DNA from: Macrostomum lignano | Taxonomy: Eukaryota | Direction of reading: 5' to 3' | NCBI GenBank assembly: GCA_002269645.1 | Contig: NIVC01000173.1 | Location: forward strand, 434,001-498,000 | DNA length: 64,000 nt | In this document: in pieces, positions 3,317-41,438 of the stretch | Layout: each line of letters begins with the position of its first letter | Numbering within the stretch: position 1 is the first letter of the stretch | Notes under the pieces: model-generated | Told to the model about the DNA's origin: nothing | The model's input: the letters and a program-made list of their open reading frames with translations, nothing else | Database searches by the model: none | Program-made: the position numbers and the translations under genes

Positions 3317-6300
3317 ATGCCATCCGGATTTCTGTGCAGCCTGTTGGGGCTTTCCTGTGCGCTAGCACTGCTCGGTGCGACCCTGGCTGATGGCGAAGCG
3401 CCGGAGACTGCAGAAAAATCCGACGCCAGCAAGGAGGAAGCGAAACCGTCACAAGCTGTTCTTGATGATGCCGACTTTTGGATTGGTGAGCTGATCTGCA
3501 GTTTTGTGTATTTAGATGGGCAGACAGATTTATAAATGCCAGCGCTAGACAATATACTGTGCTAAGACAGACAGCCACGAGACACAACCACACCAGGACA
3601 GACACCAGGACAGACACCAGGACACAGATACCAAGACAGACACTAGGACAGAGACCAGGACAGACACTATGACAGAGAGCAGGACAGACACTAGGACGGA
3701 CACTAGGACAGACACACCAAAAAAAGACACTAGGACAGACACTAGGACAGACACACCAAGAAAGACACTAGGACAGACACTAGGACAGACACTAGGACGG
3801 ACACTAGGACGGACACTAGGACAGACACTAGGACAGACACTAGGACAGACACTAGGACGGACACTAGGACAGACACTAGGACAGACACTAGGACAGACAC
3901 TAGGACAGACACTAGGACGGACACTAGGACGGACACTAGGACAGACACTAGGACAGACACTAGGACAGACACTAGGACGGACACTAGGACAGACACTAGG
4001 ACAGACACTAGGACAGACACTAGGACAGACACTAGGACGGACACTAGGACAGACACTAGGACAGACACTAGGACAGACACTAGGACAGACACTAGGACAG
4101 ACACTAGGACAGACACTAGGACGGACACTAGGACGGACACTAGGACAGACACTAGGACAGACACTAGGACAGACACTAGGACAGACACTAGGACGGACAC
4201 TAGGACGGACACTAGGACGGACACTAGGACAGACACCAGGACAGACACTAGGACAGACACTAGGACGGACACTAGGACGGACACTAGGACAGACACTAGG
4301 ACAGACACTAGGACAGACACTAGGACGGACACTAGGACAGACACTAGGACAGACACTAGGACAGACACTAGGACGGACACTAGGACAGACACTAGGACGG
4401 ACACTAGGACAGACACTAGGACAGACACTAGGACAGACACTAGGACAGACACTAGGACAGACACTAGGACAGACACTAGGACAGACACTAGGACAGACAC
4501 TAGGACAGACACTAGGACAGACACTAGGACAGACACTAGGACAGACACTAGGACAGACACTAGGACGGACACTAGGACAGACACTAGGACAGACACTAGG
4601 ACAGACACTAGGACAGACACTAGGACAGACACTAGGACAGACACTAGGACGGACACTAGGACAGACACTAGGACAGACACTAGGACAGACACTAGGACAG
4701 ACACTAGGACGGACACTAGGACAGACACTAGGACAGACACTAGGACGGACACTAGGTCAGACACTAGGACAGACACTAGGACAGACACTAGGACGGACAC
4801 TAGGACAGACACTAGGACAGACACTAGGACAGACACTAGGACAGACACTAGGACAGACACTATGACGGACACTAGGACGGACACTAGGACGGACACTAGG
4901 ACAGACACTAGGACAGACACTAGGACAGACACTAGGACGGACACTAGGACAGACACTAGGACAGACACTAGGACGGACACTAGGACGGACACTAGGACAG
5001 ATGGCTGCTCACAAATTAGTCCTGACTACTCGCAGGTACGGCCCCGTTCTGCAAGGCCACCGCCGATGACTGTGAAACATTCGACCTGAAGTTCATTCGC
5101 GAGGATTCCACCGGCAACGGTGCCAAGTGCTGGACTGGCAAGAAGGTGCTCTGTCAGCAGAAACAGTTGAAATCCGAATTCGTGACCAGCTCAAACAACG
5201 AGTTGGTGGTGGCAGTTTACAATGTCGACGAACTGTCATTCTCAGAAGAGCACAACGGACAAACTGAGAGAACTTGTCATATTCCAAGAGGTCAGTTTGA
5301 TGAAGATGTTTTTCACCTGACCAATCAGGGAGAGTCCCAATCAGTGTCTCACCTGACCAATCAGAGAGAAATCCTAATGTATTACCTGACCGATCAGGAG
5401 AATCCTAATCAGTGTCTCACCTGACCAATCAGGGAGAATCCTAATGTCTCACCTGATTAGTCATGGAGAATCCCAATCAGTGTCTCATCTGACCAGAGAA
5501 TCCCATCACTCCTTTCTGGCAGCTTTGCTAAGCAAGTACCCAGACCTGGACGTGATTATCCTAGTCGGCCTATTCGTTGGCGGCTGCATGCAGAATGGAC
5601 AGAGCAAGCCGCCCATAACAATGGGTCTGATGCTGACCAATTACGGCTTTGGTCAGGCCAGCACCATTGTTGGAGAGTCAACCCGAGGCATTACGGAAAC
5701 CAACGGCGGTGTAGTGATCGTGTCCCGCTGGCCAATGATCAGCACGAGAGAGCACGTGTTCGCTAACTATGCTGGACTGGATAGGTTTATTGAGCGAGGT
5801 GCAGTTTACGGTGGGATTAATAAGCACGGTGTCATCTACCACGTGGTTGGAACGCAGCTGCAGGTAAACCAATGAGCCATTTTCATGGTTTTTAAGCACA
5901 GGACATGTAGAACTGTACGTAGGATAATAAATTAACGTAGGAATTTCCTCAACGAAAAGCTTTTTGAACATCAATAGATCTATAAAAAAGCAATGCATTT
6001 CAAAAGATGAACACTGGGTCTGCCTCCTATCAAAAGCAATAACAGTTTTTGTGCTGAAAAAATGAGAATCTCCGCAGTGTATTTTTCGGCGGAAACCAGC
6101 CTCCTAAGCATCTAAGAAACCTATAGTTTCTCGTCCTTCCATTTGAGTAGTCCTTGCCTCTTCCATGATAGAATGAATAATTGTAGAGCCTTTGACATTG
6201 GATTCGACATCTACCGGCTACCAACACGTAATAAATTCCCGTCTCAGACACCTCGCCACTGAGTTTGGTATCAACCCAAACTTGATGCTAACTTGGTTTC

Positions 6301-7495
6301 GTCAGCCCAGTTGAGATAGTTGAGCCACCCAGCAGTAGAGATTTGGTCTTGCCCATGGACATAGATATGACAGGAAATGACAACGAAAGTAGAAAATTCT
6401 GATGTTTACCTGCACGGAAGTCGATGTTTGAGCATGATTTCTGTAAGCTCAAAAATCCGATAACAGTTTTGAAAACTGAGAAAAAGAGAGAGAGAGACGC
6501 GTCGCTACTGACATCCTTCTTTGTCAGTCTAGATACGGCCAAATAATCAACCCCCGAGTGCCTATTTGCGTGTATGTGTATGTCTATGGCCAAATCATCA
6601 ACCCCCGAGTGCCTATTTGCGAGTATGTGTATGTCTATGGCCAAATAATCAACCCCCGAGTGCCTATTTGCGTTAATGTGTATGTCTATGGCCAAATAAT
6701 CAACCCCGAGTGCCTATTTGCGTTAATGTGTATGTCTATAGCCAAATAATCAACCCCCGAATGCCTATTTGCGTTTGTGTATGTCTATGGCCAAATAATC
6801 AACCCCAGCCAGGCAGCCAGACTTTTATTGATTGGACTTGTCTATGGAGAAAGTAGCTATGCAATAAATAATATACGGCCTCTAACTAATTTCTAAGTAC
6901 GAGTAACACTAACCTTCCACCTTGCCTCACACAGTCTGGCGTGGACAAGGAAAATATCCGCCTGGAACAAGCCAAAGAAGTCGCTAATTTTATCAGCGAG
7001 CTAGAACTGCCATCGAGTCATCCGGTCATCATTAGCGGCGATTTTCAAACCGACTATCTGAGCGACAAGCCGGCGGCTGAGAAACTATTCAATACAATGT
7101 TCGCTTCAACTATGCCAGCCATTGTTAGCGAAGTCCGAGTCAACGTAGATTATCAATCCAACGACCTAGTTGAGCCAGGTAAGAATGATCAAGAGTGGCG
7201 CGACTACGCCCTGTTTAGCAACAGACACCTGCCGGCCGATCAAGCCACCCTTGAAACCAGCTTATTCACCGCTGACAAGGACATCCGCTACTGCACCAGC
7301 GCGGTCATGCAGCCAACCTACGTGTCAGCCGGTGCGATGACCTGCGCCAGCGATAAAACCACGAAGCAATTATCGGATCATTATCCCATAATTGGTCGAT
7401 TCACTTTCAATACCAATGAGCAGAGTGCGCCAATGCAGTACAGGCATCCTACGGAGCAGCCATCTTACACTAACGAGACCAGCTCGACCAATTAG
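3317..7495 (+). CDS. Secreted sphingomyelinase C-like protein (endonuclease/exonuclease/phosphatase fold), 441 aa, with N-terminal Cys-rich GTAPFC module
   Basis: Exons 3317-3485, 5036-5290, 5523-5863, 6935-7495; all GT-AG, phases consistent, 1326 nt. Signal peptide, then YNV, DVIIL, GGVVIVSRWP, YHVVGTQLQ, PVIISGDF, DYALF and LSDHYPI. Confidence 0.85.
3570..5000. repeat. 12-bp minisatellite (GACACTAGGACA/G), ~120 copies, intron 1 of the sphingomyelinase-like gene
   Basis: Read directly; source of the (GQTL)n, (VSVL)n and (TDTR)n ORFs. Confidence 0.97.
5316..5505. repeat. Degenerate short tandem repeat (CCTGACCAATCAGGGAGAATCC-like), intron 2
   Basis: Read directly. Confidence 0.8.
6536..6808. 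repeat. 51-bp minisatellite, ~5 copies, intron 3
   Basis: GGCCAAATAATCAACCCCCGAGTGCCTATTTGCG repeated. Confidence 0.93.
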
Positions 7496-10076: not shown

Positions 10077-13000
10077 TTATAACAAATGCTGGTACGATCG
10101 ACGCTGATTGACACCGACGTGGTTGCCATGGCTACCAGCTGGCGGCCACGTCACCACGTTGGACCAGCGGCCCGACCTGCCTGCGGCGTCCTCGGCGCGT
10201 AGCACAAAATGACAGGCGCCCCGACGCGTGTCGATGCCGACCTGACAGCGCATCGGCAGCGGCAAGGCGCGCAGGTCGGCAGTTTTGGCCCAGGCCTCGG
10301 CGGGCAGGCCCGGCCGCTGGTAGCAGTACCACACCGAGTAGCTGGCGATCTGCTGCTGCCGGTCAGGCACCAGGCCGCGCAGATTCCAGTGGAGCTCCGC
10401 CGATTGCCTGGCAACGGATTGCATGTATTGGGATTACGGGAGAGTACCGAGGATTGGCATTATCGGGGACTGAATTCATAAGGGGATCATGGCAGATTGG
10501 AATCATTTGGGATTATAAATTATTGATTATGGATTATAGATTTTTGGGATCATTTGGGATGATAGATTATTGGGATCATTTGGGATGATAGATTATTGGG
10601 ATCATTTGGGATTATTGATTATTGGGATCATTTGGGATTATTGATTATTGGGATCATTTGGGATTATAGATTATTGGGATCATTTGGGATCATAGAATAT
10701 TGAAAATTGAAATTGAGGGGAACTTATTAGGATTGGAATTATTGGGGAATAATTGAGGATTGGGATCAGTAAAATGGTGGAGGGAATCGATAACTGGATA
10801 TCGTCTTTAATTACCATAATTACCAATTCAATTCAACCAATTTAAATATATCCATTCATATAACATATATAAACATAAGTGTCAACTACAAAAGTTTAGC
10901 CAATCCAGCAACTGTTACAATGCAAGGAATGGCAGTTATTTAAATTTAAGCAGTTCATTTAATAATGTCCCAAGGCATTAGCCCACTTTGCTAGCAAATT
11001 AAATGTAAGTAAGCAAAAGTGGAATTTGACTGACTTGGGTAAGATATTAAATATAATTAATTCGATGCTTTATGTTAACCACCATTATAACAATACATCA
11101 TGCGACGTAAAGCGCTTTCAAGATGCAAATTAATTTAATTAATAACAGTGGCAGACAGGCTAATGTCCCAAGGCATTAGCCCACTTTGCAAGTTCAAAGC
11201 TTCACTTTCTCTTAATAAAAAGGGAAACTAAGTAGCGAAGTGGAATTTGACTGCCTTGGGTGAGACGCGTAGATGATTTATTGAAATTATTTATGTAGCG
11301 AAATGAACATCTTAGGGTAAATTTATTATATAGGATCGATATCCATAGATAAAAACCAATAATATATATTTCAGTTAGATTTAAAAACAATAATCGATAT
11401 TCCTGATTAACTAATAAAAATCAATAATCTATATACCCAATTGACTAATAAAAATTGACAATCAAAATTCCCCATTCACTGATAAAAATCAATAATCGAT
11501 ATTCCCGATCGACGAATAAAACCAATAATCGATTTTCTTGATTGACTCAAAAATCAATAATCGATATTTCCGATTGATTGATAAAAACCAATAATCGATT
11601 TTCCTGATAAATGAAAAATCAATAATCGATATTCCCGATCGACTAATAAAACCAATAATCGATTTTCTGCGTAACTAAAAAATCAATAATCGATATTCCA
11701 TATCGACTAATAAAAGCCAATAATCGATATACCTGATTATTGATAAACTAATAGAAATCAATAATCGATATCACGGATACCAAAATCAGTACAAAGCACA
11801 GCCTAACCTATCAGCCGCATTGGCGCACACTTCAAGCACCGGCGCTTGTCGCAAGCTCAATGGCAGAGTCGCTAATCTGTCCAAAGGCGGTCCTGGTGGT
11901 GGCGGCGGCGGCTGCTGCTGAACAGACTGCGACGAAGCGACAACAGGTTGAGCATGAGAGCGCGCCTGTTGCTGGCTAGCATTGACGCTGAAACTGAAAC
12001 TGCTAATTGAAGACACAGCAGCGCTCGATTGTTGCGGCCCGTTTGAGACTGCGCCAGCCACTGCCAGAGATGACGGAGCTGTCGATGTGTATCGAACGGC
12101 CTGTAGCGAGCCCGCTGTCAGGGCAGATGGCAGGTCGGCAAAGAAAGGATATTAAGAAAGGCTCGACTTGATTCTTAACTGTCTGACCTAGCTAGAAATT
12201 TTGACACTCAAAACCCTGAATCTCGAGGACTCAGTTGCCTGAATCACGAGGACTCAGTTGCCTGAATCTCGAGGACTCAGTTGCCTGAATCACGAGGACT
12301 CAGTTTCCTGAATCCTGAGGACTCAGTTGCCTGAATCATGAGGACTCAGTTGCCTGAATCTCGAGGACTCAGTTGCCTGAATCCCGAGGACTCAGTTGCC
12401 TGAATCACGAGGACTCAGTTTCCTGAATCCTGAGGACTCAGTTGCCTGAATCATGAGGACTCAGTTGCCTGAATCTCGAGGACTCAGTTGCCTGAATCAC
12501 GAGGACTCAGTTGCCTGAATCACGAGGACTCAGTTGCCTGAATCATGAGGACTCAGTTGCCTGAATCCCGAGGACTCAGTTGTCTGAATCATGAGGACTC
12601 AGTTTCCTGAATCCTGAGGACTCAGTTGCCTGAATCATGAGGACTCAGTTGCCTGAATCATGAGGACTCAGTTGCCTGAATCATGAGGACTCAGTTTCCT
12701 GAATCATGAGGACTCAGTTGCCTGAATCCTGAGGACTCAGTTGCCTGAATCCTGAGGACTCAGTTGCTTGAATCATGAGGACTCAGTTGTCTGAATCATG
12801 AGGACTCAGTTGCCTGAATCATGAGGACTCAGTTGCCTGAATCATGAGGACTCAGTTGCCTGAATCCTGAGGACTCAGCGACCTGAATCTCAGAGACTCA
12901 CTTGCCTGAATTTTGAGGACTCGGCTGCCTGACATTTAAGAACTCAGCACCCTGGATCTTGAGGACTCAGCACGCAGAATCTTGAGGACTCAGCGCCCTG

Positions 13001-16952: not shown

Positions 16953-18082
16953 TAGCTAGGCCTAGTTTATACCCATATACCAATGCAGTAAAGCTTGAAT
17001 GTTTGCATGTGCATATAGGCCTAGGTCCTATTAGACTCAGAGTACTATGGTATTATAGGGGTCTAGGCCTAATCAATGGCAGCGGATAGCCCCCAGATGA
17101 CCACCCCTTTAACAAAAATTTTGAAAGTATGCGCAAGACCACAAGAAAATTTTTTCTGACTAATGGCAGATGCCAGGGGTAGGGAGCAGGGGGTGACCAC
17201 CCAACCACTGCCCACCCCCCAACTGGAGGTGCTGTCACCACTGTAATATGTCTAAATGTAAGCATTTAAGTATTAAACAAGATCCTTTTAATTTAGGGTA
17301 GGTCACCATCACATTCATGCTTTGGATTATCAGTTAGGGGCCTACATATGCAGGTTAGGGCCTAAGACAGTATTATATTATTATAGGCCTAGGCCTAGGC
17401 TAGGCCCTAATGAAACGTGTAACCATGTCCATCGTGTAAAAAAGTGTAGTAGTAGTTTATTGTTACTAATGATAAAGGCCTATGTGGATTAAGACCGCGA
17501 AAAATTAGGCCCAAATGACGATGTAATAAATCCACATACTACAACTAACATTTCCAACCAGAAAAAGAGAAATTGCAAAGAAACTTGGAATTGGAAGTGA
17601 CAGGTCACAGGTTCGTTCGTTCAACTATAAATTTTCTTTCTTTTAGATTAATTTGACAACCAAAGCGTCTTTTGAAACTCAATAAAATTTCTAATTAACT
17701 GCAACAGGGTTGTAACTAATTAACAACCTACCAACTATTTTACTTTTACCTAAAAAAAACGGAACAAGGACAAGTACAGCAAGTCGGAGTCGGAGACCTT
17801 GACAAGAATGATCTTGAATTTTGCATATTACGAGGTTTAAAAAGTACAACAAAATTAAAAGTGTTTTTTGTAAATTATGAAATAAGCGTTATTAAATGAG
17901 CATTATATTATATAAAACATATTATTGCGTTAAAAATGTTTAGTGAGAGCTGAATTCTTGAATCACAAGCCAGTATCTCTATGCTACTATTGAAACTCGA
18001 TTAATTTCAACTGAAGCAAGTAAATGCCCATTTTTTGTTTATCGAATACAAGTAGTTTTATGATTGGATCCGGGGTTAAACC

Positions 18083-21000
18083 ATGGCGACAGAAAACAAA
18101 GCTTCCGACAAGGAAGAACTGATTGATTTAAACGAGAGATTTCACTTTTACGTTCGTCGTGTACGCCAGCTTCGTGATGAATCCGATTTGGAGACATTTT
18201 ACAAGTCTATTGCCACTCTTGAAGATGAAGTAAAAGAGGTTCGAAAGTCCTACGAATCAGAAATCTCCAAACTGAAGTAAGAAATACTATTTAACTTATA
18301 GGTCACTAAAGCAAATAGATAGGTAGTTTAGTTGTCACATCGGTATTAAATCGTTTTTACTTCATTCCATCAAACAAAGTTTCTTTTTACTTTAGCGAGA
18401 TTCATTCATCAATTTATGATATATTTTGTACGCGTGTCGTAAGTAAGCATAAGTAGCATCTAACAGTAATGGATTTAGAGGAGGCGCAAAGGCCCTCCCT
18501 ATGAGTTAGCTTTTTGATTTTTTAAGTTGGGTTTTGTATATTTACCTTTCTTATCTTTCTTATCTTTCTTATCTTTCTTACCTTTCCCAATTCTTTATTT
18601 AACATTCAGTCAAATTGAAGAGAGCATTTATTATAACTTTATTTCTCTACCTGTGTACATGAGTTGTATGAATGAATAATTAAAAGCAAAAATAACATTA
18701 GAAATCTGCGCCTCCGTACAATTTTTTTGGATCTGGAGGTAAATATACGTGTATGGTTACCACAACAATTCGATATGTTTATGGGAATAATTACAGTATA
18801 CTGAGTACTTAAAAGAAAATACATATGTACCGCTCGAAATCTATATTTTCAGAAAAAAATATGGAAATTATTAGAAATTTTAATCGCAAAAATAAAAATA
18901 AGTTTTGAAAGCATTCAACCGAACTTCAAAATCTGTATCTCTTAGCTAAAGAATCGCTGTCAATTATTTCTTTCATGCATAGATTTACGCATACGATTAT
19001 TTTGCCCGGGACTAAACTAAAAGTTTGCTAAACTAAAACTAAAACTCAAATTTTTAATAGCAGAAAAATAATTTATTAACAAAATCTGACACCAAAAAAT
19101 TTTTTAGATATGCCATCGAGATTCTCAATCGAGAGAAGTCAGAGATGGAGAAAGACATTATTGCTCGCAAGAACATGGAAGCACATTTAAATGATCGGTA
19201 AGTGCTGGTTTTATGTTCATTGTTTGGAGCGAATTAGGTCTGTAACGTATACGTAGCTATCTTCCAACCAATAAACCCGTGATTTTAGCTTGAACGTGGA
19301 GGTGGACAAGACTCAGCGCTACGTGACAGAGATCAGCCAGTTGAAAAATGAAATCGTCGACAAAGACTACCAAATTCGCGAGCTGAATATGAATCTTAAC
19401 CAGGCCCAATACGACAACAGCGGGATGAAGAAAGACTTGGAAACAAAGACTAGACTGGCTGAGGACTTGAAGCGACAGTGAGTCGACTATTTTGAAATTT
19501 ATTTGCAGTCGAAGGAAATATAATTGCAAACACAACAATGCCTAAATTTGTAGACTTGATCTAAGCAAGAGCGAGTACAAAGACACCACCAATCGTCTGC
19601 AGATTGTGGAAGAGAAACTCTCTTTTCAGGAATCATTCACAGAAGAAGTGAGTAAAGCATGTTGACAGATAAATTTAAGCTTCAAATGATGTTGAGAAAG
19701 TTGAACTTAACCTATAGTATGCTAATAGACTATGACTTCTCCCGTAATCATTAGAAGGCATGGAACTAAGCTTTGTGAGTATCTGGGAAATGGTAAAGTT
19801 CAATATTTATAAATTCGTGACTATAATGACCAGGAGAGGGTAGAGTCCGAGCTCCGCCATGACCAGGAGAGGGTATGAGAGTCCGAGCTCCGCCATGACC
19901 AGGAGAGGGTAGAGTCTGAGCTCCCCCATGACCAGGAGAGGGTAGAGTCCGAGCTCCGCCATGACCAGGAGAGGGTAGAGTCTGAGCTCCCCCATGACCA
20001 GGAGAGGGTAGAGTCCGAGCTCCGCCATGACCAGGAGAGGGTAGAGTCCGAGCTCCCCCATGACCAGGAGAGGGTAGAGTCTGAGCTCCCCCATGACCAG
20101 GAGAGGGTAGAGTCCTAGCTCCCCCATGACCAGGAGAGGATATAAGAGTCCGAGCTTCCCCATGACCAGGAGAAGAGTATAAGAGTCCGAGCTCCGCCAT
20201 GACCAGGAGAGGGTAGAATCCGAGCTTCGCCATGACCAGGAGAGGGTAGAGTTCGAGCTCCACCATGACCAGGAGAGGGTAGAGTCCGAGCTTCGCCATG
20301 AGAGGGTCTCTGAGAGCGAGCTTCGCCATGAGAGGGTCTCTGAGAGGGTCTCTCCTGGCCATGACCAGGAGAGGGTAGAGTCCGAGCTCCACCATGACCA
20401 GGAGAGGGTAGAGTCCTAGCTCCCCCATGACCAGGAGAGGGTAGAGTCCGAGCTCCCCCATGACCAGGAGAGGGTAGAGTCCGAGCTCCGCCATGACCAG
20501 GAGAGGGTAGAGTCTGAGCTCCCCCATGACCAGGAGAGGGTAGAGTCCGAGCTCCGCCATGACCAGGAGAGGGTAGAGTCCGAGCTCCCCCATGACCAGG
20601 AGAGGGTAGAGTCTGAGCTCCCCCATGACCAGGAGAGGGTAGAGTCCTAGCTCCCCCATGACCAGGAGAGGATATAAGAGTCCGAGCTTCCCCATGACCA
20701 GGAGAGGGTAGAGTCCGAGCTTCGCCATGAGAGGGTCTCTGAGAGCGAGCTTCGCCATGAGAGGGTCTCTGAGAGGGTCTCTCCTGGCCATGACCAGGAG
20801 AGGGTAGAGTCCGAGCTCCACCATGACCAGGAGAGGGTAGAGTCCTAGCTCCCCCATGACCAGGAGAGGGTAGAGTCTGAGCTCCCCCATGACCAGGAGA
20901 GGGTAGAGTCCGAGCTCCGCCATGACCAGGAGAGGGTAGAGTCTGAGCTCCCCCATGACCAGGAGAGGGTAGAGTCCGAGCTCCGCCATGACCAGGAGAG

Positions 21001-24000
21001 GGTAGAGTCCGAGCTCCCCCATGACCAGGAGAGGGTAGAGTCTGAGCTCCCCCATGACCAGGAGAGGGTAGAGTCCTAGCTCCCCCATGACCAGGAGAGG
21101 ATATAAGAGTCCGAGCTTCCCCATGACCAGGAGAAGAGTATAAGAGTCCGAGCTCCGCCATGACCAGGAGAGGGTAGAATCCGAGCTTCGCCATGACCAG
21201 GAGAGGGTAGAGTTCGAGCTCCACCATGACCAGGAGAGGGTAGAGTCCGAGCTTCGCCATGAGAGGGTCTCTGAGAGCGAGCTTCGCCATGAGAGGGTCT
21301 CTGAGAGGGTCTCTCCTGGCCATGACCAGGAGAGGGTAGAGTCCGAGCTCCACCATGACCAGGAGAGGGTAGAGTCCTAGCTCCCCCATGACCAGGAGAG
21401 GGTAGAGTCTGAGCTCCCCCATGACCAGGAGAGGGTAGAGTCCGAGCTCCGCCATGACCAGGAGAGGGTAGAGTCTGAGCTCCCCCATGACCAGGAGAGG
21501 GTAGAGTCTGAGCTCCCCCATGACCAGGAGAGGGTAGAGTCCGAGCTCCGCCATGAATTATGGCTAGGAGAGGATTAAGACAAAGCGTCTGGACCAGGGA
21601 GCGTGAGAGACCAGGTTCTGTGAGTAGACTTCTCGTTAGCTCCACGATTAGAAAGTGGTGGCACTACGACTATGTTGTCAAAATACTTGTAACCATGGAC
21701 GATTTTTTGCGCAGAACAGCCATCAAAGGCATCCTTTAACAGTGACAAACTACAAATCACTAACCTATAACAATACGAATTGCAGCGCATGGGCGAGCTC
21801 AAGCGTCGAATCGAGACTTACCTGATGCAGATTGCTGAGCTAGAAAACAAATGCGAACTGTCCGAAGCTCGAGAGGCCGCCTTCCCCGACCAGCTTCGCC
21901 AAGTGAAAGAGACGGCGGACACCGATTTGCGCAAGTTTCAACGCGACACTGAGGAGTTCTACAAGGGCAGCATCCAGACGCTGCAGGAGCAGCTCGAGGA
22001 GGAGATTGGCGAGAATAAAAAACTACAGGGCGAAGTTGAACGTCTCAACGATAAGATTGTTGAGTACAGGAATCAGGTGAGAAATGCATTTGCACATAGA
22101 TGATTATCGAACCCCTTTGCGATTGGCTGTGCTACAGCTCAGTTCATGTGGCACACATTTCCATTTGTACATTTTAATCACTTGCTCATCAATCGCAGGT
22201 TACGGAGCTGAAGTCTCAAATCACCATGCTGGAGCAGCAGAAGCGCGTTCTCAGCCAATCATTGGAGTCTGAACGTCACCAGAACACGTACGCAATCAAC
22301 GGACTCGAGCGCAAGCTCAAGGAGGTCCAACAGGAACTGCAGGCCAAGGTGACCGAGATGAACCAGAAACAGGACGTGAGCGCCTCGCTCCGGGCAGAGC
22401 TGGACGCGATGCGCGCTCTGATTGAGGAGGAGGAGACCCGGCTGGGAATCCGGATCAGGCCGGCTGCGCCCATCAACTATCCCGGAAGCGGTGGTAACGG
22501 TGGAGGCACTCAGCAGCAGCAGCAGTTGACAACAGTTACAACTGTAGTTGAAGCTACCAGTACATCGAAGACTGCCGAGACAACAACAGCCGTTGTTGCC
22601 TCAACTCAGGTGGCAGGTAAAACTGAACAAACTAAAACCAAAACTTCGAACGCGGAGGCAACAAGCTCCTCAGAGGTGCAACACGACATTGCTGAGCAGA
22701 AGCGGCCGCAGTTGAAGCAGCGCGACTCGGACTGGCAGAAGATGAGGTTCCTCGCCGAGGAGACTCAGAAAGCTATGGGCAACAGCGGCGGCGGCGGCTC
22801 GTCTGGCAGCTCGCAGGCCGGCGAGGAGGGCATGCAACTGGACCTGAACGAAGCGACTGCAGCGTCGGCCGACGAGGCGGTGTCGCCTAACGAAGGCTAC
22901 GACGAGCCGAAAACTCCGCGTGACAAAGTGGTCGGACCCGTGCTGGGCGGCAGTAGCAAGGGACCGGGCGTATCCAATGCCGTTGGACCTCTGGTTGGTG
23001 CTGGGGCGTCTGGCGACAAAGAAGCGACACCACCTAGGAGCGGGTCGAGTAAGTGCACTCTGTTTAAACACCAGTCTTTTCTATCTCGCTTCGGATTGGC
23101 TTATCGTAGCATCCTGACAGCTTCAGATGATCGTAAACGTGCTTTGACCTCTTCACCATGCACATGCATTTTCCTAATGATATCTTGCATTAATTAGTTC
23201 AATTAAACAATGCCCCTTTCTAATTAGGAGGGAGTTCATTTTGCGATACGAATCATTTTGGAAAACTTCTCATAAACAGGCAAACGTCGCTCTGCACGCA
23301 ACGAAGGCGAGGGTCGCGACTACTTCGAGGAGTTGTTCGAAGACATCGACGATCGGATGGAGGAGGCAGGCGCAATGCAGCCGCAGCCTCAGGATACGTC
23401 GGTCATGCAGTCCAGGTGAGTCAAGACTCTTAATTAAGGTTACCTAGCGAAATAAGAGACGAGATCCTGAGATGAAATAGAGTGAGGCGAAGTAACTGAT
23501 AGCTAAGTATATGATCAGGTGATTATTTAAAAAAAGTTAATATGCAACATGCATGACATAAAGCCGAAACCGCTGTGTTTACAACTGCCTCTAACACCCC
23601 GTCTACGAATATAGGAACTGAAATTGAACTGGAGCATGTAAAAATTCGGTTTCTCAAATGTGTTTTCAATTCACGATTGTTCACTAAAGTTGGATCAACT
23701 AATGTTGTTCATTTTCTGTTTTATTCAATAAGCTGCACAATTGCAGCTGCAGTACATCTCTAAAAGAAGCATTGAAAACTTTTTGCAGCGCCATCGGCGA
23801 CATCAAGATTCTGGAGGTGAATCCGGAGGGAAAATTTGTTCGAGTTCTCAACTCCAATGAGAAAACGGTGAGAGATTGTAACGTGTACTTAATGGACAAC
23901 GTGGGGAACTCCTTCATTTGAGGATAAATTCCCGGAACTGAATTCTGCATGCTCCCAGAGTTGAAAATCGAATTCATTCGGTCCCGTTCATTGGAGCTGG

Positions 24001-27000
24001 AATCCACTTTCTGTCCAGCCATTTAGCAAACCGTTTAGCCTCTTTGTCCATCATCTTTTGCTGGCAGCTGTTTTTTTGTCTCACATCCTACAGCAAGGGT
24101 CAACAAACTTTTTACCTCAAGGGCCGGATGAAGAAGTCAGCTCATGGCTATGGGCCAGTTGAGAGAAGAAAGGAGGGGAATAGAAGAGATAAGAAACAAA
24201 ACAAGATGAGAAAACAGGGGAGAGACGAGAGAAGGAAGAGAAGAGAGAGGGGACAGGGGAGAGGGAAGAGAGGAGAGGGAGATAGAGGGGAAAGAGAGGA
24301 GAGAGGGAAATCTGAGAGAGAAGAGAGAAGGAGGAGAGAGGAGAGAGAGGGGAGAAGAGAGAGGGAGATAGAGGGAAGAGAGGAGAGGGAGATGAGAGAT
24401 AGAAGGGAGAGAGGAGAGAAGAGAAGGGGAGAAGAGAGAGGGGAAGAGAGGAGAGAGGAGATAGAGGAGAGAGGGGAGAGAGGAGAGAGGGGAGAGAGGA
24501 GATAGAGGAGAGAGGGGAGAGAGGAGATAGAGGAGAGAGGGGAGAGGAGATAGAGGCGAGAGGGGAGAGAAGCTCTCTCTAGAGAGGGGAGTGGGGAGAG
24601 GGGTGAGAGAGAGGGATAAGAGAGTGGGCAGTGGTGGGGAGAGAGGAGAGAGGAGAGAGGAGATAAAGGAGAGAGAGGAGAGAAGCTCTCTCTAGAGAGG
24701 GGAGTGGGGAGAGGGGTGAGGGGAGAGAGGGATAAGAGAGTGGGCAGTGGTGGGGAGCGGGGAGAGGAGAGAGGAGATAAAGGAGAGAGAGGAGAGAAGC
24801 TCTCTCTAGAGAGGGGAGTGGGGAGAGGGGTGAGGGGAGAGAGGGATAAGAGAGTGGGCAGTGTGTGGGGAGCGGGGAGAGGAGATAGGAGAGAGAAGAG
24901 AAAAGACAAACATTGAGCGGGTCGGATTGCTATTGTGAAGTTTCAATGGACCTGAAGGCCGGATAGAGAAGCTTCCCGGGCCGCATGTGGACCGCGGACC
25001 GGAGTTGTCCGACCCCTGTGACCTACAGCAAGTCCTCTGGTAATGAGTTAAATCCCAATTCTATCTACCCTTACATCACCGCTTCCACAACCAGGAGGCC
25101 GAGTTCGGCAACTTCGCGGTGCAGCAAAACATCGGCGGCCATCCGATCGCCGTGTTCCGCTTCCCGCCGCACACGAAAATCAAGCCGAACAGCACGGCGA
25201 CAATCTGGGCCGGCTGCAATCCGCCAACCGAAGCGTTGCACCAGCCGCCTACAGATTTCTATTGGCGAGAATATGACCGGTTCAATACGGGGCCGGAGTG
25301 CACTACGGTTGTGTGCGAGCCAAGCGGACGGGTGAGACGCGTGTTTCTCTGGGACCCTTTTGAATTCTTTGAAAATGGTTACTTTCAGCATGCCTACATG
25401 CAACTTTAATTTGTGCTTCAACCTCAAAGGCGGTTGTAGCCTAGAAAGGGGGCTGAAGCCAAGTGGTTACAACGTCAGACTCACGACTGAAACGTCGGGG
25501 GTTCGATTTTCGACCTACGCTCGTACTCGGAACAATTTGTGTCCTTGAGCAAGACAGCTAACTCTGCATTGCTTCAGTTTACCCAGCTGTAAAATGCTAG
25601 ATACCACACCTTTACTGAAAGATTGATGCGGGCACAGCTGCGATCGTCGGGCTGGTCCCTGACTTCACACCTTTAGAAAGATTGGTAGCAGTGGTAGCAC
25701 GTCTGATTATTTTACGCCGAAGTACCTTTGACTCAGACACAAAAGCACGATTTGGCATAAAAAACCTTTATTATCAACTGCACCAGCTTCAGAAAAGTAT
25801 GCGATTTGGACTTTGGACACGATCGTACGTCTCTCACTGAAACGTGCGTCCCCGATTTTCCTCATATTACAGTCCATAGCCTGGACCACGCCGTACCACC
25901 GCTACTCAAAGGACGCCTTTCTTATCGTCACGCCGACAGCCTCGCAGAAAACGTCGGCTAGAGACCCATCTGAAGACTTTGACGGCCTTGAGGGCGAGCC
26001 AAGACTGCCGCAGCATCGAACCCTGCCGCGAGAGGAGCCTGCAACCTTGAGGCGGTGAGTTTAGTGCTTTTGGAAACAAAATTTATGACATTTAAAGACG
26101 ACCTCATTTGGGACCTCATGTGCATGGGGCCTCTACTAAAATTGATAAAAATAAAAATTGGTATACCATGTGAAGTTTAAAGGTGCAGAATTGCTGTCTC
26201 AAAACGTAATTAACTGACCTATCTTCATAGTTTGTACCCTACTTGCTCCCGCCTCAAAACACACAGCGAGAAGACTATGCCCTGCTACGTGTCGTCGCGT
26301 CATCCACACGCCCAGCCAACCTGCAACAGCGTGCATCCGCGATGTGACTCGCCTCGCACCGGCCTGTGGGGCAACGATAATAGCTCAGTAAATAGGCAGT
26401 CGCGCTCGCAAATGACTCGAGTACCAGATCGAGTTCCTGGTGAGCGTATTATTGGTTGTCATGGCTCGTACATGTACTTTTTGCATTCCGTATTGTATTG
26501 AATCACTGAATCAGTTAGTTACGATGGGTTGATGCAGCGAGGGATCGTTTTTACAAGTTTGAAACTTCGTCGAACAGTCTTATGGTAATTTTTACCTCAC
26601 TAGAGTAAAACTTCACAAGCTCGAAATTTCACTATAAATGAATTCTTTAAGATTTTATACTAGCGGAAGTTGCTCGCAAGGCTTTTTAACTATGTGAAGT
26701 CTCGATTCGAGCATATGAAACGCGACGCCCACGTTTTGGGTGACAAATTAAAAATGATCGGTTTGAATTGAAAGTCTTCATTGATATTTTTTGTTTAGCT
26801 TATTGGCTTACATTTGACTAAAGAGGTAGAACATATATTGGCTGTTTCTCCTATATCTTGTGGAGAGTCCATAGCTATGGAGTTAATATATTAAACTGCA
26901 GTTGCTAACCTGAAGACCTTAATTCTACCTTTGCTTGAAGAGATCAACTAAAATGGTATTGGTAAAAATGATTTAACAGAGCGATTGTTGAATGCAATCT

Positions 27001-27109
27001 TATACCAGGTGAGCCGTACACAGGCAGCAGCAACCAGGTGATGGGCTCGGCCCGTGTCATGCACTATCAAGCCAGCCTTCGCAAAAGTGCCACTATTGGC
27101 AACAGAGCT
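18083..27109 (+). CDS. Intermediate filament protein with long (lamin-type) rod plus LMNTD1/IFLTD1-like lamin-tail domain, at least 884 aa
   Basis: Exons 18083-18276, 19108-19197, 19289-19477, 19554-19647, 21786-22076, 22199-23048, 23280-23415, 23789-23867, 25095-25331, 25873-26054, 26231-26439, 27009-27109; all GT-AG and phase-consistent, 2652 nt. Coil 1A KEELIDLNERF, coil 2 end ELDAMRALIEEEETRL, lamin-tail GDIKILEVNPEGKFVRV...FRFP...TIWAG...PPTDFYW. Candidate last exon 27261-27311. Confidence 0.88.
19825..21555. repeat. 33-bp minisatellite (CATGACCAGGAGAGGGTAGAGTCCGAGCTCCGC) with higher-order structure, intron 4 of the filament gene
   Basis: Read directly. Confidence 0.97.
24094..25018 (+). 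mobile_element. hAT/Charlie-like non-autonomous element with expanded GA-rich interior
   Basis: Imperfect TIRs CAAGGGTCAACAAAC / GTTGTCCGACCCCTG and a subterminal GGGCCGCATGTGGACCGCGGACCG typical of Charlie-type ends. No clean 8-bp TSD. Confidence 0.7.
25448..25710 (+). mobile_element. tRNA-derived SINE with CORE-like central domain (copy 1)
   Basis: A-box-like GCCAAGTGG, B-box GGTTCGATT at ~25500, and core TGTGTCCTTGAGCAAGACAGCTAACTC...CAGTTTACCCAGCTGTAAAATG. Second copy at ~62845. Boundaries approximate. Confidence 0.72.
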
Positions 27110-29002
27110 GTAAGTGCATATTGTCTTTTTTTCAATTACTGATCGTCTTGAACTGAATGCAGTTACTACTACTGTAGATCTATATAGGCCGAATTCGACG
27201 CTTAATTATACTTACTGAAACATTAACAAACTAATCCATCCGCCCGTTTTGTTGGGTCAGTCGTATTACATGCGGACTTTTACCTTTCAACACCTATTAG
27301 CACTTTTATAATTGGGTGATTGGGTGTCCCAGAAGTATAGTGCCAGTTTTATGCGTGTAAAGGTGGTACGTTACACCTTTCTTCCGTGCAAGCGTAGAAT
27401 TACTGTATCGTGTATATATTTATATTTATATCTTTATCTATATGGTCAAGGGTGCGCAAGCAAATGCCCCTAGAGCAGGAAGAATACATGCGAAAATCGG
27501 ATTTTCTGTGCTTGAAAGCTAAAAAAGCTGCTTATAGTCGGCCAATGCAAAAAGTAATTAACACTCACGTTCCTATACTTGTGGCAGAAAGAAAAGGGTG
27601 ACACATAAACTTCTATGACACCCCTCGTACAAATTTTATAACTTTATTAATTTACTTTAGTCAGTATATTTACGACTCGTAGAGGGGCGTTAAATAGTTT
27701 TAAGTTTTACTTCTACATGTACATGCAAAGTGTGTAATTAAGTACGTTCGCATACATGTACATTTGGGAGCCAGATACATGTATGATTGCCCTAATTTAT
27801 ATGTACATACATGTACATTTAACTATCGCGACGAAACGATCCAGGTTAGGTAATGGTTCGTAATTATTATACAGTATGCATGTTTGCGGTAATGTAATAA
27901 TAAACATATATTACTACAGTGTTTCTTAGGTACTGATATGTACAACAGGTGTGATTTTATTTAGCCCAACTTAAAGTCAATCATGCAATTAAATAAGTGA
28001 GCAATTTAACAAATTGATAGTAGATATAGTTTCTTGAAAATCGACAGTTAATTATTATTTCAAATTTTTTAAGCAAAAGCCTAAATCTTTTCAATAATAT
28101 TTTATTTAAAAAAAATTACTTAATTGTAGACTACAATTCCGCAAAAACGTTTACTCTATCTTTAACACCAAAACGACAAATTTATAACCATTAACATTTA
28201 TGTAAAGACGTATTATATGTAGTTGCGTTGACGTGCTGAGTATACCTGCCTAATGTAACGTTTTACATCGTCAGAAACTTTAACAAACAACTGCAAGGGT
28301 GCATTAGCTTTTTATATGTAATATCCTTTAACCATATCATAATTTATTTTTTGCCATTGCAGCTACCTCTAGTCAGCAGTGCTTTCAATACACAATACTC
28401 AAGCAGTATGCCGCATTTTAAGTACGTAATTTACACATTTTATCATAAAATTATTATTGATCAGCACAGAAAATATTCCAGTTGTAAAACATAATTTGTG
28501 ATTGCACTTCTTGATGCATTATTTTGGCCTAATTGTCTATATTTACCGGCGCGTACTCGCATGCAGTGGCAGAGCAAGCTATTAATGCAGATGCAGGACG
28601 AATGTTATGTTGCCTGCTATATGTAAACCTTTATCTTAAAACAACTTTCACGATAATTAATTTGCTTTGAAATTTGTCTCAATAAGAAATGAATTGTAAT
28701 TTTTATGGCAGAACTGTAATTTTCAAGTCTGGCAAAATCAAGAATTATTGGGTCTTTATTTTGCATACGAAATGTAATATATAATTTTGTTATAATTGGT
28801 AAAATGCAACCGTGAGGCAACCCGGGGGCCAACAGATAATCTATAATAATAGATACACTGTTAGGCCTTAACTATGCTTTATATTTTTGCTTTCATTATC
28901 GCTAATGAGTCGTCATGTTATGCATATTTGCTTTTCAACCTATCCTCTTATACCTCTGTCAATTAAAATTGCACGCAAGGACTACTCAAGTACTTGAGTA
29001 GG

Positions 29003-29192
29003 CAGTAGCGCAACCAGAAATTTTTCAAGGGGGGGGGCGGATTCTGAGGGTAAAGTCCCGGGAGGGGGGGCGGCGGAGGGGTGGCTCTGTTTTTGGCGAA
29101 AATTCGCTTGGTCCCCCCTTTGATTTTTTTTCGGTCCCCCGCCTAAGGGGGGGGGGCGACCGCCCCCCCGCCCCCCCCTGGTTGCGCCACTG
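29003..29192. mobile_element. hAT-like MITE, 190 bp, G/C-run rich
   Basis: TIR CAGTAGCGCAACCAG / CTGGTTGCGCCACTG with a perfect 8-bp TSD, TGAGTAGG (28995-29002 and 29193-29200). Confidence 0.92.
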
Positions 29193-29505
29193 TGAGTAGG
29201 TCTTGACTACTCGAAAAATGGTAATAAAATTGTGTTAATTAAGACCCTGTCCGTCTCCACATTAGTCGTATTCGGTATTCGAATCAGTATTCGTAGTAGT
29301 TTATTTATATCGGCAAAAATTAAATATTATCGCGAAGGATAATGTCTGACCTCGGCTTCATTTTCATTACAGCTCAGTGGCTCCACCTAACATTGTCCAT
29401 GTTATGATATTTGTCTTCTCAGTGGACGCACCTTTTGCCAAGACAAGTACGAGCGTATAGAGATGAAAGGAAATAAATTAGGATGTAGATGATCTTCGCA
29501 ACTAA

Positions 29506-29578
29506 GCCGCGATAGCTCAGTAGGGAGAGCGTTAGACTGAAGATCTAAAGGTCCCTGGTTCGATCCCGGGTCGCGGCA
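29506..29578 (+). tRNA. tRNA-Phe (GAA), 73 nt, intronless, no encoded CCA
   Basis: Acceptor stem GCCGCGA/TCGCGGC, anticodon arm TTAGA-CTGAAGA-TCTAA, T-loop GGTTCGATCC. Confidence 0.97.
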
Positions 29579-29579
29579 A

Positions 29580-29586
29580 TTTTTTT
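29580..29586 (+). terminator. RNA polymerase III terminator (T7)
   Basis: T-run immediately after the tRNA. Confidence 0.85.
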
Positions 29587-30865
29587 GTCTGTGGCGACCA
29601 TCTGTCGGCAATATATTTTCATGGATGTTTTTACTATTTCGTCAAATATTAATTTATAAAATTTTCAACTAACTAAAGTTCACCTTTAACGCAAAAGTCC
29701 ATCAGTTTACGATATGTGTCGAAAGTATGTCTTTTCATGCGATTTTTTAACTGAAAAATACTCGAGTTAGGAGTATAAACTTGTAAAGTTTAAATTTGCA
29801 CGCTAGCAACTAACTTCGGCATTTTCAACCAAATTTTAGCCTGACGTAATTCTTCGCTCGGATCTGGAGCGGCCAAGCCCGTTTTCAAAGCCACACAGCC
29901 GGTTCGACGATGGAATGAAGCAGGTTCAGAGCATGTACAATTCTGAGCATTTACCGCCAATGCCCCGGCCGCCAGCAGCTGTAAAAGCCGAAGGAAACTG
30001 AGTTGCAAAAGCGACCAAATGGTTTACAGCTATATTGTTTGAATTTCAAAAAAAGTAGCACGAATTTATATTTTTAAGCCGTCTTGCTGCCAGCTTTAAG
30101 TTTTACGCCGAGTTTTTTATTTTTATATTGTTTTCATCTACTTATAGTAGAGAAATAATAATAGTTGCTTTGAAATTATTCTAACCTTATAATTACCGTG
30201 TGCGCACGCCAGTAGCTCGTGATTAAAGCTTTTAAAAAAACACCGTCTCCTTTTAATGCTTTTTCCAATTCTCTTACTTTTATTGATTGCCTAACTACTT
30301 AAGGATGATAGATCTATATTTTGCCACTATTTTAAAATTTTCGATCGGATTAACACTTAACAAATATAAGAAAAATCTGACAATTTTTTTTGCGAATCCC
30401 ATGACAGAATCTGAAACTTTCAATACCGAATTCATCGTCAATATACCCATTTGCTTCTACGTTTTGCCTTTTTTAAGCTGTATCGTTTTTGCAGTATGTA
30501 CAGTACAAATATAAATACTTATAATAATTATTAAATAAATTCAGACTAAACGTAATGTTGCTGACGTTCCAAAGTTTAGGACAAATTTTCAGTATTCGAT
30601 GTACTTTTGTTTGTTAATAGATTCTAGTGCCGTAGAACATCGTGACAGTATTTGGCGCCGCCCTGACACTACTGAGAATTGGCGCCCCTCTGACATAATT
30701 ATCGCCACCCTGACCCTATTGGCGCCACTCTGACACTTTTAGCGCCACCCTGGCGCATAATGGCGCAACTTCTGACTCTATTATAGCGCTTCTAGTTGAC
30801 ACTACCGGTTGCCCCTGACACTATACTAGGCACCACAAACTATCTATCTATTGGCACCCCAACAC

Positions 30866-39475: not shown

Positions 39476-41438
39476 ATGTCTGGTTTATCTGGCATAGGCC
39501 TACTAATCTACAACGCAGCCCTAGGATCAGTGTTCGCTGTTGGTCTCCTTGGCAACTGCCTAGTGATCGGGGTGATCTTACGCCAACGCTCCGGTACTCG
39601 ATCGCCAACGAGTATCTACCTGGCTAATTTAGCTCTGGCCGATGCCCTGCACCTGTTGTCAATACCGCCTCTGATTCATACGTCCATCGCGAACTACTGG
39701 GCTTGGTCAGAGCTGGCCTGCAAGGTGTATTACCTACTGTTCTACATGAACTCCACCATGTCAGTTTATATCATCACTGCTATGAGCTTCGATCGCTATA
39801 AAGCGGTCGTGTCCCCGTTCACTTCGGCCGGCTTGCGTAACAAACGATTTGCCAGCATCATTCTCGTCGCCCTGTGGATCATTGGAGCCCTGGTGATCAG
39901 CCCCGTCTGCTTGTATGCTCATATTGATGAGCTGTACAACGCCACGCACTGCACGCATTCACAGGTAAGAATTGGACACAGCTAAAGGGACACAGGCGCG
40001 TCGAATGGTACAATATAATTAATACGACTCTGTGAGGTATTCAACCAAACATATTTGATCAAGAACCTTTAGAATGAAGCAGTAAACGTGATCAGTAAAC
40101 TCAGTAACGCCAGAAACACACAGTCAGTAACGCCAGTAACACACAATGAGTAACGCCAGTAACACACAATGAGTAACGCCAGCAACACACAATCAGTAAC
40201 GCCAGTAACACACAGTCAGTAACGCCAGTAACACACAGTCAGTAACGCCAGTAACACACAGTCAGTAACGCCAGTAACACACAATGAGTAACGCCAGCAA
40301 CACACAATCAGTAACGCCAGTAACACACAGTCAGTAACGCCAGTAACACACAATCAGTAACGCCAGTAACACACAGTCAGTAACGCCAGTAACACACAGT
40401 CAGTAACGCCAGTAACACACAATCAGTAACGCCAGTAACACACAGCCAGTAAAAAGTTCAGTTTCGTAACATAGTCACTAATGTGTGAAGTAACCATGAG
40501 CATAAATGTCTTTGTGTCAACCACTTTGACACAAAATTGACAAAAATACAACAGTTTGAACACATTTATAGAAAACAAAATTCGTCTCTAATGCTCCATT
40601 CTACCAGTGTTTTCACAGCTGTCACACAATTTCTCTCGCACAGATGCCACCGATGGAGGACGCCAACGAGACGGAGCCGGTGCCAGACGATCTGTCCGAC
40701 ATGATGCGCAGCTTTTTCACGCATCCGGCCTACTTCATTCGCTACATTTTTGTCACCGGCTGCGTGCTGCCCGGCCTAATGCTGATCTGCTTCTACTCGC
40801 TGATTGTGCACAAGCTCTACATGATGAAGCTCGCCAGGAACTCCAGCGGTCAGGCCCGACAGAGATTCGAGAAGGTCACCTTGCTTGTTGGAGCCGTTGT
40901 CGCTTTCTACGTTGTCTGTTGCCTGCCTCACTGGGTGCACGTGAACGTGAGCCTGAGCGTGAGCGGCCACTCCTACTGGCTGGTGGTCAGCTCCCACATC
41001 ACCGCCCTGCTCGGCTACGTCAGCAGCGCCGGAAATCCCGTGCTCTACGCCTTTTTAAACGACCCGTTTCGAGCGTCACTACGTGAGTTTCTCGGCATCA
41101 ACGGGCCGGCCGGCGCTGGTGGCGCTGGAGGAGCGCTGGGCGCTGCCGGCGCTGGCGGTGCTGCTGGCGGAGCTGCCGGTGCAGCGGCTGTAGCCGGCGG
41201 CGCAGCCGGAGCGGCAGACGGGCTGATTTCGGGCACCGGCGGGGCTGCCGACGCGGAGGCCGTCGCCACCACCCGCCAGCTGTTGAGTGGCAGCGTCGGA
41301 ACCGGCGGCATCTTCGGCGGTGGAGCTGTCGTTGTTGGCGGCGGTGGCGGCGAGGGATCTCCAACGATGGGCCTGACGACCTACAATGTCACCTCTATGG
41401 AGAGTCAAGAGCACGGAAAGGAACAGTCGGCTGTGTAA
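39476..41438 (+). CDS. Class A peptide GPCR, somatostatin/allatostatin-C/opioid receptor group, 427 aa
   Basis: Exons 39476-39964 and 40644-41438 (phase 0). GLLGNCLVI, IYLANLALAD, MSFDRY, LPG...ICFY, CCLPHW, NPVLYAFL. Confidence 0.9.
40095..40450. repeat. 23-bp minisatellite (CAGTAACGCCAGTAACACACAGT) in the GPCR intron
   Basis: Read directly. Confidence 0.94.

Follow-up and report, generated by a model that had tools for sequence, protein, structure and literature searches.

Does the flatworm Macrostomum lignano possess a member of the nematocilin/cilin class of intermediate filaments, which is reported to be missing from its phylum? The question is raised by a gene at 18083-30001 (+) of a 64,000 nucleotide (nt) stretch of M. 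lignano DNA, hereafter the window, which covers positions 434,001 to 498,000 of the forward strand of contig NIVC01000173.1 (assembly GCA_002269645.1); the locus is identical to this record, and all coordinates below refer to the window. We conclude that the gene is, with high probability, the M. lignano orthologue of this class, a lamin-derived, non-nuclear filament family whose mammalian members, LMNTD1 (IFLTD1) and LMNTD2, have lost the rod.

Nematocilins were described as proteins with a rod, an immunoglobulin (Ig) fold and a conserved 'nematocilin tail domain', and the loss of the rod in mammals was noted in the same study (Kollmar 2015; PMC4448529). Human nematocilin was subsequently equated with LMNTD1, and the class with LMNTD1/2 under the name Cilin (Kremnyov et al. 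2025; bioRxiv 10.1101/2025.08.21.671432). According to the latter study, turtle and frog LMNTD1 retain the full filament architecture, and the class lacks a nuclear localisation signal and a CaaX box. Both studies state that Platyhelminthes are without the class. Divergent flatworm proteins that clustered with nematocilins were classed as lamins, and their clustering was ascribed to branch attraction (Kollmar 2015). The original prediction for this locus had described an LMNTD1-type protein with an intact rod and had proposed an old, distinct class of filaments, with LMNTD1 as its truncated relic. Our sequence tests support this proposal, which is correct but already published (Kollmar 2015; Kremnyov et al. 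2025). The sole new aspect is the presence of the class in a flatworm, a phylum reported without it.

A three-frame translation of 18000-27400 showed that the spliced frame opens with an ATG at position 18083 and that a TAA precedes it immediately in the same frame; the product starts with MATENKASDKEELIDLNERFHFYVRRVRQL. A continuous frame of 12 exons ending at 27311 had been predicted. The frame is real, but the gene has 13 coding exons and ends at 30001. The 13-exon coding sequence comprises 2778 nt, is interrupted by twelve introns, all with GT-AG borders, and translates exactly into the 925 amino acids (aa) of the GenBank protein BOX15_Mlig010331g1 (P0001), which a homology search returned with 100% identity. 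This protein is annotated as a hypothetical protein, is unnamed in GenBank and bears precomputed Pfam Filament and LTD domains. The sole difference between the deposited protein and the 12-exon model lies at the 3' end. After ...SATIGNRA, encoded by the end of exon 12 (27109), the deposited protein reads on as PDVILRSDLERPSPFSKPHSRFDDGMKQVQSMYNSEHLPPMPRPPAAVKAEGN, which is encoded by 29840-30001 behind a TTTTAG acceptor. The splice from exon 12 to this exon yields PSPFSKPHSRF..G.KQVQS...PPMPRPP, a sequence kept across the family (tblastn E down to 3e-12 in other phyla). A terminal mini-exon at 27261-27311, encoding SYYMRTFTFQHLLALL followed by a stop, was rejected; it has no homologue and is not part of the deposited GenBank model.

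The predicted protein carries a complete rod, and its length of ~360 residues agrees with the original description of a lamin-length rod. Pfam Filament matched aa 9-367 (E 4.5e-13, above the curated cut-off), which places the rod end at about aa 367 (nt 22441). The rod profile was matched at positions 2-372; the rods of lamin A, lamin LIII and protostome filaments have this length too. Alignment of the rod with human lamin A, in the form in which its sequence is given in Kollmar's supplementary alignment, revealed no 42-residue deletion in coil 1B. The heptad register is long and continuous in a crude heptad scan, with a single proline (aa 223) in the L12 region. Both filament consensus ends are present. 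At the rod end, the M. lignano protein and mollusc cilins have a common AM(R/K) signature, where lamins and ordinary filaments read AYRKLLEGEE. The head comprises just 8 residues; relatives often have heads of 5-20 residues.

The rod is followed by a low-complexity linker of ~200 aa (aa 368-569), encoded in the same exon as coil 2, and by the pre-Ig motif GEGRDYFEELF. The equivalent motif in molluscs and hemichordates is GQGKDYFDEMF, and a counterpart is found in aardvark LMNTD1. The Ig fold was recognised by Pfam LTD with 43.2 bits (E 5.8e-11; cut-off 34.3) and matches solved Ig structures of lamin A (E 1e-15). It carries the family signatures QQN.GGHP, HxPPxDF.WKE and ECTT.LC.P.GQ..AW. Another ~190 residues after the Ig fold contain the short conserved motifs RHPH, GNDNSSVNRQSRSQ, GEPYTG, PSPFSKPHSRF and PPMPRPP. 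The motifs quoted in the original prediction (EGEGRDYFEELF, AIGDIKILEVNPEGKFVRV, QQNIGGHPIAVFRF, NSTATIW, HQPPTDFYWREYDRF, CTTVVCEPSGRSIAWTTPYH and NRQSRSQMTR) are all present, and the vertebrate LMNTD1 motifs given there are close to the real ones in aardvark LMNTD1 (P0046). A motif rule applied to the full protein detected no CaaX box, the C-terminus being ...PRPPAAVKAEGN. By motif rule only, the protein has no canonical nuclear localisation signal of the form K-K/R-x-K/R; KRRSAR, the sole basic cluster outside the rod, does not fit this pattern. In contrast, the lamin LIII sequences P0003-P0005 carry KKRK plus CVVM, CAVM or CSLS.

Word-indexed homology searches gave weak results, with 10 matches for the full protein, 2 for the tail and 17 for a five-sequence tail alignment, none of them a named flatworm. 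The family came to light only when the tail (aa 571-925) was run against 1.84 billion representative proteins in an exhaustive HMMER search, which returned 365 matches, 53 of them with E <= 1e-30. The best matches are 760-1160 residues long and align at their C-terminal ends over nearly the whole tail; they are full-length proteins with rod and tail. Cluster look-ups assigned them to molluscs (Ostrea, Solemya, Mizuhopecten, Patella, Babylonia, Biomphalaria, Arion), a nemertean (Tubulanus), an annelid (Owenia), a hemichordate (Ptychodera), amphioxus (Branchiostoma) and a shark (Scyliorhinus). Most are labelled 'uncharacterized' or 'lamin-like', and the scallop protein has the UniRef name 'Intermediate filament tail domain-containing protein 1'. 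Proteins named LMNTD1 among the matches were those of the hawksbill turtle (762 aa, E 1e-50) and the aardvark (381 aa, rod-less, E 2e-35). The tail groups with LMNTD1/nematocilin in the homology search that had been proposed as a check.

Rod and tail could in principle stem from a chimeric model, in which both the annotator and the original prediction had fused two genes arranged head to tail, one for a rod-only filament and one of rod-less, LMNTD1-like type. Retention of the 231-nt intron 6 would lead to a stop at 23194 and to a tail-less rod protein, and databases hold rod-only (Mytilus P0002) as well as tail-only models. However, the frame of exon 6 stays open for 200 residues beyond the rod and stops just 10 residues short of the conserved pre-Ig motif, exon 7 starts in the correct phase with GT-AG borders, and no ATG-initiated tail-only frame with a family-like N-terminus was found. 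More than 20 orthologues from six phyla have rod, Ig fold and tail domain in one chain, several of them on transcript-like contigs of 3-4 kb, and the closest rod relative, the trematode protein P0101, also bears an Ig fold. We consider a chimera very unlikely. Since exon 6 is open from coil 2 to 10 residues before GxGxDYF and the orthologues are single-chain proteins, the sequence supports a single gene model to which the exons of both rod and tail belong.

To assign the protein to a family, rod (aa 1-372) and Ig fold were scored separately as phmmer bits. The rod scored 85-147 bits against cilins, 15 against turtle LMNTD1, 46 against lamin A, 43-55 against lamin LIII and 27-34 against protostome filaments, with no score for LMNTD2. 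The Ig fold scored 130-167 bits against cilins, 129-137 against LMNTD1, 71-83 against LMNTD2, 58 against lamin A, 24 against lamin LIII and 15-25 against protostome filaments. Its identity is 47-62% to cilins and LMNTD1 and 19-29% to lamins. A profile of the region after the Ig fold, the nematocilin tail domain, was built from 23 non-flatworm members. It matched aa 754-920 of the M. lignano protein with 126 bits (E 2e-39) and aardvark LMNTD1 with 60 bits; lamins, LMNTD2 and canonical filaments gave no match.

Trees of the rod (371 columns) and the Ig fold (113 columns) were calculated by neighbour joining and bootstrapped 300 times. Cilins and three flatworm proteins were split from lamins and ordinary filaments with bootstrap values of 100% for the rod and 97% for the Ig fold, which independently places each part in the same family. 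Within the Ig tree, the M. lignano protein is found among lophotrochozoan members. The protostome filaments P0006-P0010 form their own clade with 99-100% support. Domain scores, Ig tree and tail-domain profile bear out the earlier claim that the tail tracks LMNTD1 over lamins and ordinary filaments, both inside and beyond the Ig fold.

A comparison of intron positions, also proposed with the original prediction, covered the rod for Mytilus cilin and both rod and tail for LMNA. Introns interrupt the rod first after aa 64.67, then after aa 94.67 and aa 157.67, each time in phase 2, and all three are identical in position and phase to consecutive introns of the Mytilus trossulus cilin gene. Introns at aa 94.67, 189.0, 641.0 and 720.0 align with what we take to be the exon borders of LMNA; that at aa 94.67 presumably corresponds to intron 1 of human LMNA and that at aa 189.0 to the LMNA position 213.0. 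Such positions fit a lamin-derived gene. At the level of sequence, every defining feature of the nematocilin/cilin/LMNTD1 class is found in the M. lignano gene.

Is the protein then a divergent nuclear lamin of a flatworm instead of a member of a separate cytoplasmic filament class? Its architecture is lamin-like, with a long coil 1B, an Ig fold that matches the solved lamin A structures, several introns presumably aligned with those of LMNA, and the KRRSAR patch at the site of the lamin nuclear signal. Moreover, flatworm proteins clustering with nematocilins have been called lamins on the grounds of branch attraction (Kollmar 2015). This explanation is at odds with the lack of a CaaX box and of a K-K/R-x-K/R motif, with rod and Ig-fold scores against cilins that are two to three times those against lamins, with the complete nematocilin tail domain, which is absent from lamins, and with the bootstrap support for the cilin clade. 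A lamin is thus even less likely than a chimera. Least likely of all is a Macif1-type filament, of the ordinary protostome cytoplasmic kind, with a long tail by chance. In its favour, Macif1 and ~11 other filament transcripts are known from M. lignano (PMC4016567), and a long coil 1B is likewise combined with a lamin-type Ig tail in protostome cytoplasmic filaments. Against it, identity with Macif1, the 605-aa canonical anchor-cell filament of M. lignano and a different protein (PMC4016567), was rejected, canonical filaments (P0006-P0010) reach only 27-34 bits for the rod and 15-25 bits for the Ig fold, have no tail domain and form the separate clade described above, and the M. lignano protein has ~190 residues of conserved tail domain after its Ig fold.

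Table 1. Coding exons of the M. lignano cilin gene (window coordinates) and the protein parts they encode; NTD, nematocilin tail domain.
Feature	Position	Strand	Encoded part
Exon 1	18083..18276	+	start codon, 8-residue head MATENKAS, start of coil 1A (EELIDLNERFHFYVRRVRQL)
Exon 2	19108..19197	+	rod: coil 1A / start of coil 1B
Exon 3	19289..19477	+	coil 1B
Exon 4	19554..19647	+	end of the long lamin-type coil 1B
Exon 5	21786..22076	+	linker L12, first part of coil 2, family-typical IPD/FPD proline (aa 223)
Exon 6	22199..23048	+	remaining coil 2, rod-end motif AELDAMRALIEEEETRL, low-complexity linker; one open frame
Exon 7	23280..23415	+	KRRSAR basic patch; conserved pre-Ig motif GEGRDYFEELF
Exon 8	23789..23867	+	start of lamin-tail Ig fold (SAIGDIKILEVNPEGKFVRV)
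Exon 9	25095..25331	+	Ig core; family signatures QQNIGGHPIAVFRFPP, HQPPTDFYW, GPECTTVVCEPSGR
Exon 10	25873..26054	+	Ig end SIAWTTPYHRY (to ~nt 25905); start of NTD
Exon 11	26267..26439	+	NTD motifs RHPH..HP and GNDNSSVNRQSRSQ
Exon 12	27009..27109	+	NTD motif GEPYTG...GSARV
Exon 13	29840..30001	+	PSPFSKPHSRFDDGMKQVQS...PPMPRPP, stop TGA; true last exon

With the M. lignano protein taken as a cilin, its closest full-length counterparts are bilaterian cilins such as those of Ostrea edulis (LOC125645531), Mizuhopecten yessoensis and Ptychodera flava (named 'lamin-B2-like'), with 55-62% identity in the Ig fold and 112-147 bits for the rod. They have the same chain order of rod, linker, GxGxDYF, Ig fold and a tail domain ending in PPMPRPP, and likewise neither a CaaX box nor a nuclear signal. 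The head differs, with 8 residues in M. lignano compared with 166-255 in bivalves and Patella; it is also short in the annelid, hemichordate, amphioxus and shark members. The M. lignano protein ends in AAVKAEGN, whereas cilins usually end with ...SSW/SAC. Cilins of molluscs, the nemertean and the annelid (P0015, P0017, P0018, P0020, P0029) end in one of two modules, ...GTIRFGPPSPFLSPLQQEF... or ...PSPF.SPH.RF..GLDQ..SQH..F.PPMPRPP..SW. The Solemya protein (P0015) contains both in tandem, which suggests alternative terminal exons, and M. lignano has the second module only: the GTIRFGPPSPFLSPLQQEF module of some molluscs and the nemertean has no counterpart in the last intron of the M. lignano gene.

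Vertebrate LMNTD1, represented by the proteins of the aardvark (XP_007947986.1, 381 aa) and the hawksbill turtle, resembles the M. lignano protein in three respects: it carries the GxGxDYF motif, its Ig fold is 47-51% identical (129-137 bits), and it shares the tail domain over the first half. Mammalian LMNTD1 is without a rod, whereas the M. lignano protein has a complete and well conserved rod and a complete tail domain. The earlier statement that a full rod is missing from vertebrate LMNTD1 applies to mammals and birds only; hawksbill turtle LMNTD1 (P0025; XP_077663584.1, 759-762 aa) keeps most of it: the rod profile matches the 762-aa protein from position 65 of 372. This rod is divergent and scores 15 bits against that of M. 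lignano. Cnidarian nematocilin/cytovec and ctenophore Ml-Cilin belong to the same family in published trees (Hwang 2008; Kremnyov 2025). An Acropora member (P0231), annotated as 'Lamin-A', falls into the same clade as the M. lignano protein, with 85 bits for the rod and 97 bits for the Ig fold. Hydrozoan nematocilins have no Ig fold (Kremnyov 2025), unlike the M. lignano protein. Only cnidarian and ctenophore members have been localised experimentally, to the cnidocil filament, ciliary rootlets and basal bodies. Nuclear lamins (human lamin A, fish lamin LIII) share rod length, long coil 1B and Ig fold with the M. lignano protein, which differs from them in the lack of CaaX and of a KKRK-type signal, the extra tail domain and the AM(R/K) signature in place of AYRKLLEGEE; its similarity to them is two- to three-fold lower than to cilins.

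Two further flatworm sequences were found among the tail matches, the trematode 'LTD domain-containing proteins' of Calicophoron daubneyi (CAL8093474.1; P0101, 786 aa) and Fasciola hepatica (THD25556.1; P0150, 692 aa). Of all rods, theirs are closest to the M. lignano rod (181 bits for C. daubneyi, 101 bits for F. hepatica), and the three proteins form a trio with 100% support inside the cilin clade of the rod tree. The near-absent head and the CTTxxC-P-GQ-AW signature of the Ig fold are also shared. Unlike in M. lignano, the tail domain and the GxGxDYF motif are not detectable in the trematode proteins; their Ig folds are far more divergent (35-38% identity) and did not join that of M. lignano in the Ig tree (12% support). 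Both are candidates for degenerate flatworm cilins and may be the 'divergent flatworm lamins' of Kollmar. The published absence of the class from Platyhelminthes is contradicted by the M. lignano gene and probably also by the two trematode proteins. We lean towards the view that the cilin was never lost in flatworms, with a complete, slowly evolving copy in M. lignano, and that the trematode LTD proteins, and probably Kollmar's divergent lamins as well, would be true cilin orthologues that have shed their tail domain.

What might the protein do? Its rod would form parallel coiled-coil dimers and, from these, cytoplasmic filaments of the 10-nm type, as in the family. The Ig fold and the motifs of the tail domain may act as a docking module to ciliary or basal-body structures. 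In Macrostomum, expression would be expected in the multiciliated epidermis and the protonephridia, where the protein would stabilise rootlets, basal bodies or other ciliary structures. Sperm of M. lignano are aflagellate. Ml-Cilin of ctenophores was located at ciliary rootlets, comb plates and sperm basal bodies, and homologues in oyster and sea urchin are enriched in ciliated cells (Kremnyov et al. 2025). A role in ciliated cells has been reported for Ml-Cilin of Mnemiopsis, nematocilin of Hydra, the larvae of oyster and sea urchin, and LMNTD1 of humans; by analogy, the M. lignano protein probably works as a cytoplasmic, cilia-linked filament of ciliated cells.

Several points weigh against a cilia-linked cilin. 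Outgroups of the trees were few (four lamins, all from vertebrates, and five closely related protostome filaments), and neighbour joining, a distance method, was the only tree method. A literature search for the locus tag of the gene retrieved no paper and no expression, localisation or assembly data for Mlig010331. A scan for RFX X-box-like sites found none near the 5' end of the gene; this negative is uninformative as to expression in ciliated cells, and the locus itself lends the link to cilia no support. With a head of 8 residues, filament formation is an assumption; heads are needed for the assembly of lamins and vimentin. KRRSAR sits where lamins have their nuclear signal and leaves room for weak nuclear import. 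An AlphaFold model of the tail, calculated from a 15-sequence alignment, was unusable, with a mean predicted local distance difference test score of 46.8, and was discarded.

The scan of the window detected an RFX X-box-like near-palindrome, GTAGCCATGGCAAC, at 10122-10135, 8 kb upstream of the gene. An unrelated tandem array at 42984-43922, with units of ~51 bp, repeats GTTTTCTTAGAAAC ~18 times and accounts for an excess of X-box matches in the window.

Introns of the gene contain further features. Intron 4 harbours a 33-bp tandem array at 19826-21556 (~52 copies, 86% matches) that includes three occurrences of a 30-bp sub-repeat. Several frames of the array are open on either strand, and it might pass for coding sequence. 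A GA-rich, imperfect, microsatellite-like array with periods of 7-25 at 24216-24846 in intron 8 explains why GC and AT skew are strong in the 24-26 kb bin. In intron 9, a sequence at ~25430-25560 resembles the head of a tRNA-derived short interspersed element (GGTTCGATT as box-B-like motif), with no call by ARAGORN or Rfam. The last intron contains a tRNA-Phe(GAA) gene at 29506-29578 (+), on the same strand as the cilin gene and followed by a run of seven T (ARAGORN; Rfam tRNA 69 bits). Neighbouring frames, assessed by eye only, resemble exons of an amino-acid transporter (1352-2056, -), an enzyme of endonuclease/exonuclease/phosphatase type (5444-7495, +) and a rhodopsin-type G protein-coupled receptor (39476-41438, +). 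Much of the remaining window consists of tandem-repeat DNA.

If flatworms indeed never lost cilin, the published statement that the class is absent from Platyhelminthes would be overturned. The M. lignano gene places the class, with every defining domain, in an early-branching flatworm, and its sequence forms a bridge between the class and two odd trematode proteins. RNA interference and transgenesis exist for M. lignano (PMC7053086, PMC11075559), so that the hypothesis of a ciliary scaffold would be directly testable in this animal. As a transgenic, RNA interference-amenable and transparent organism with a multiciliated epidermis, M. lignano would, on the same condition, be the first tractable bilaterian model for the function of cilin/LMNTD1.

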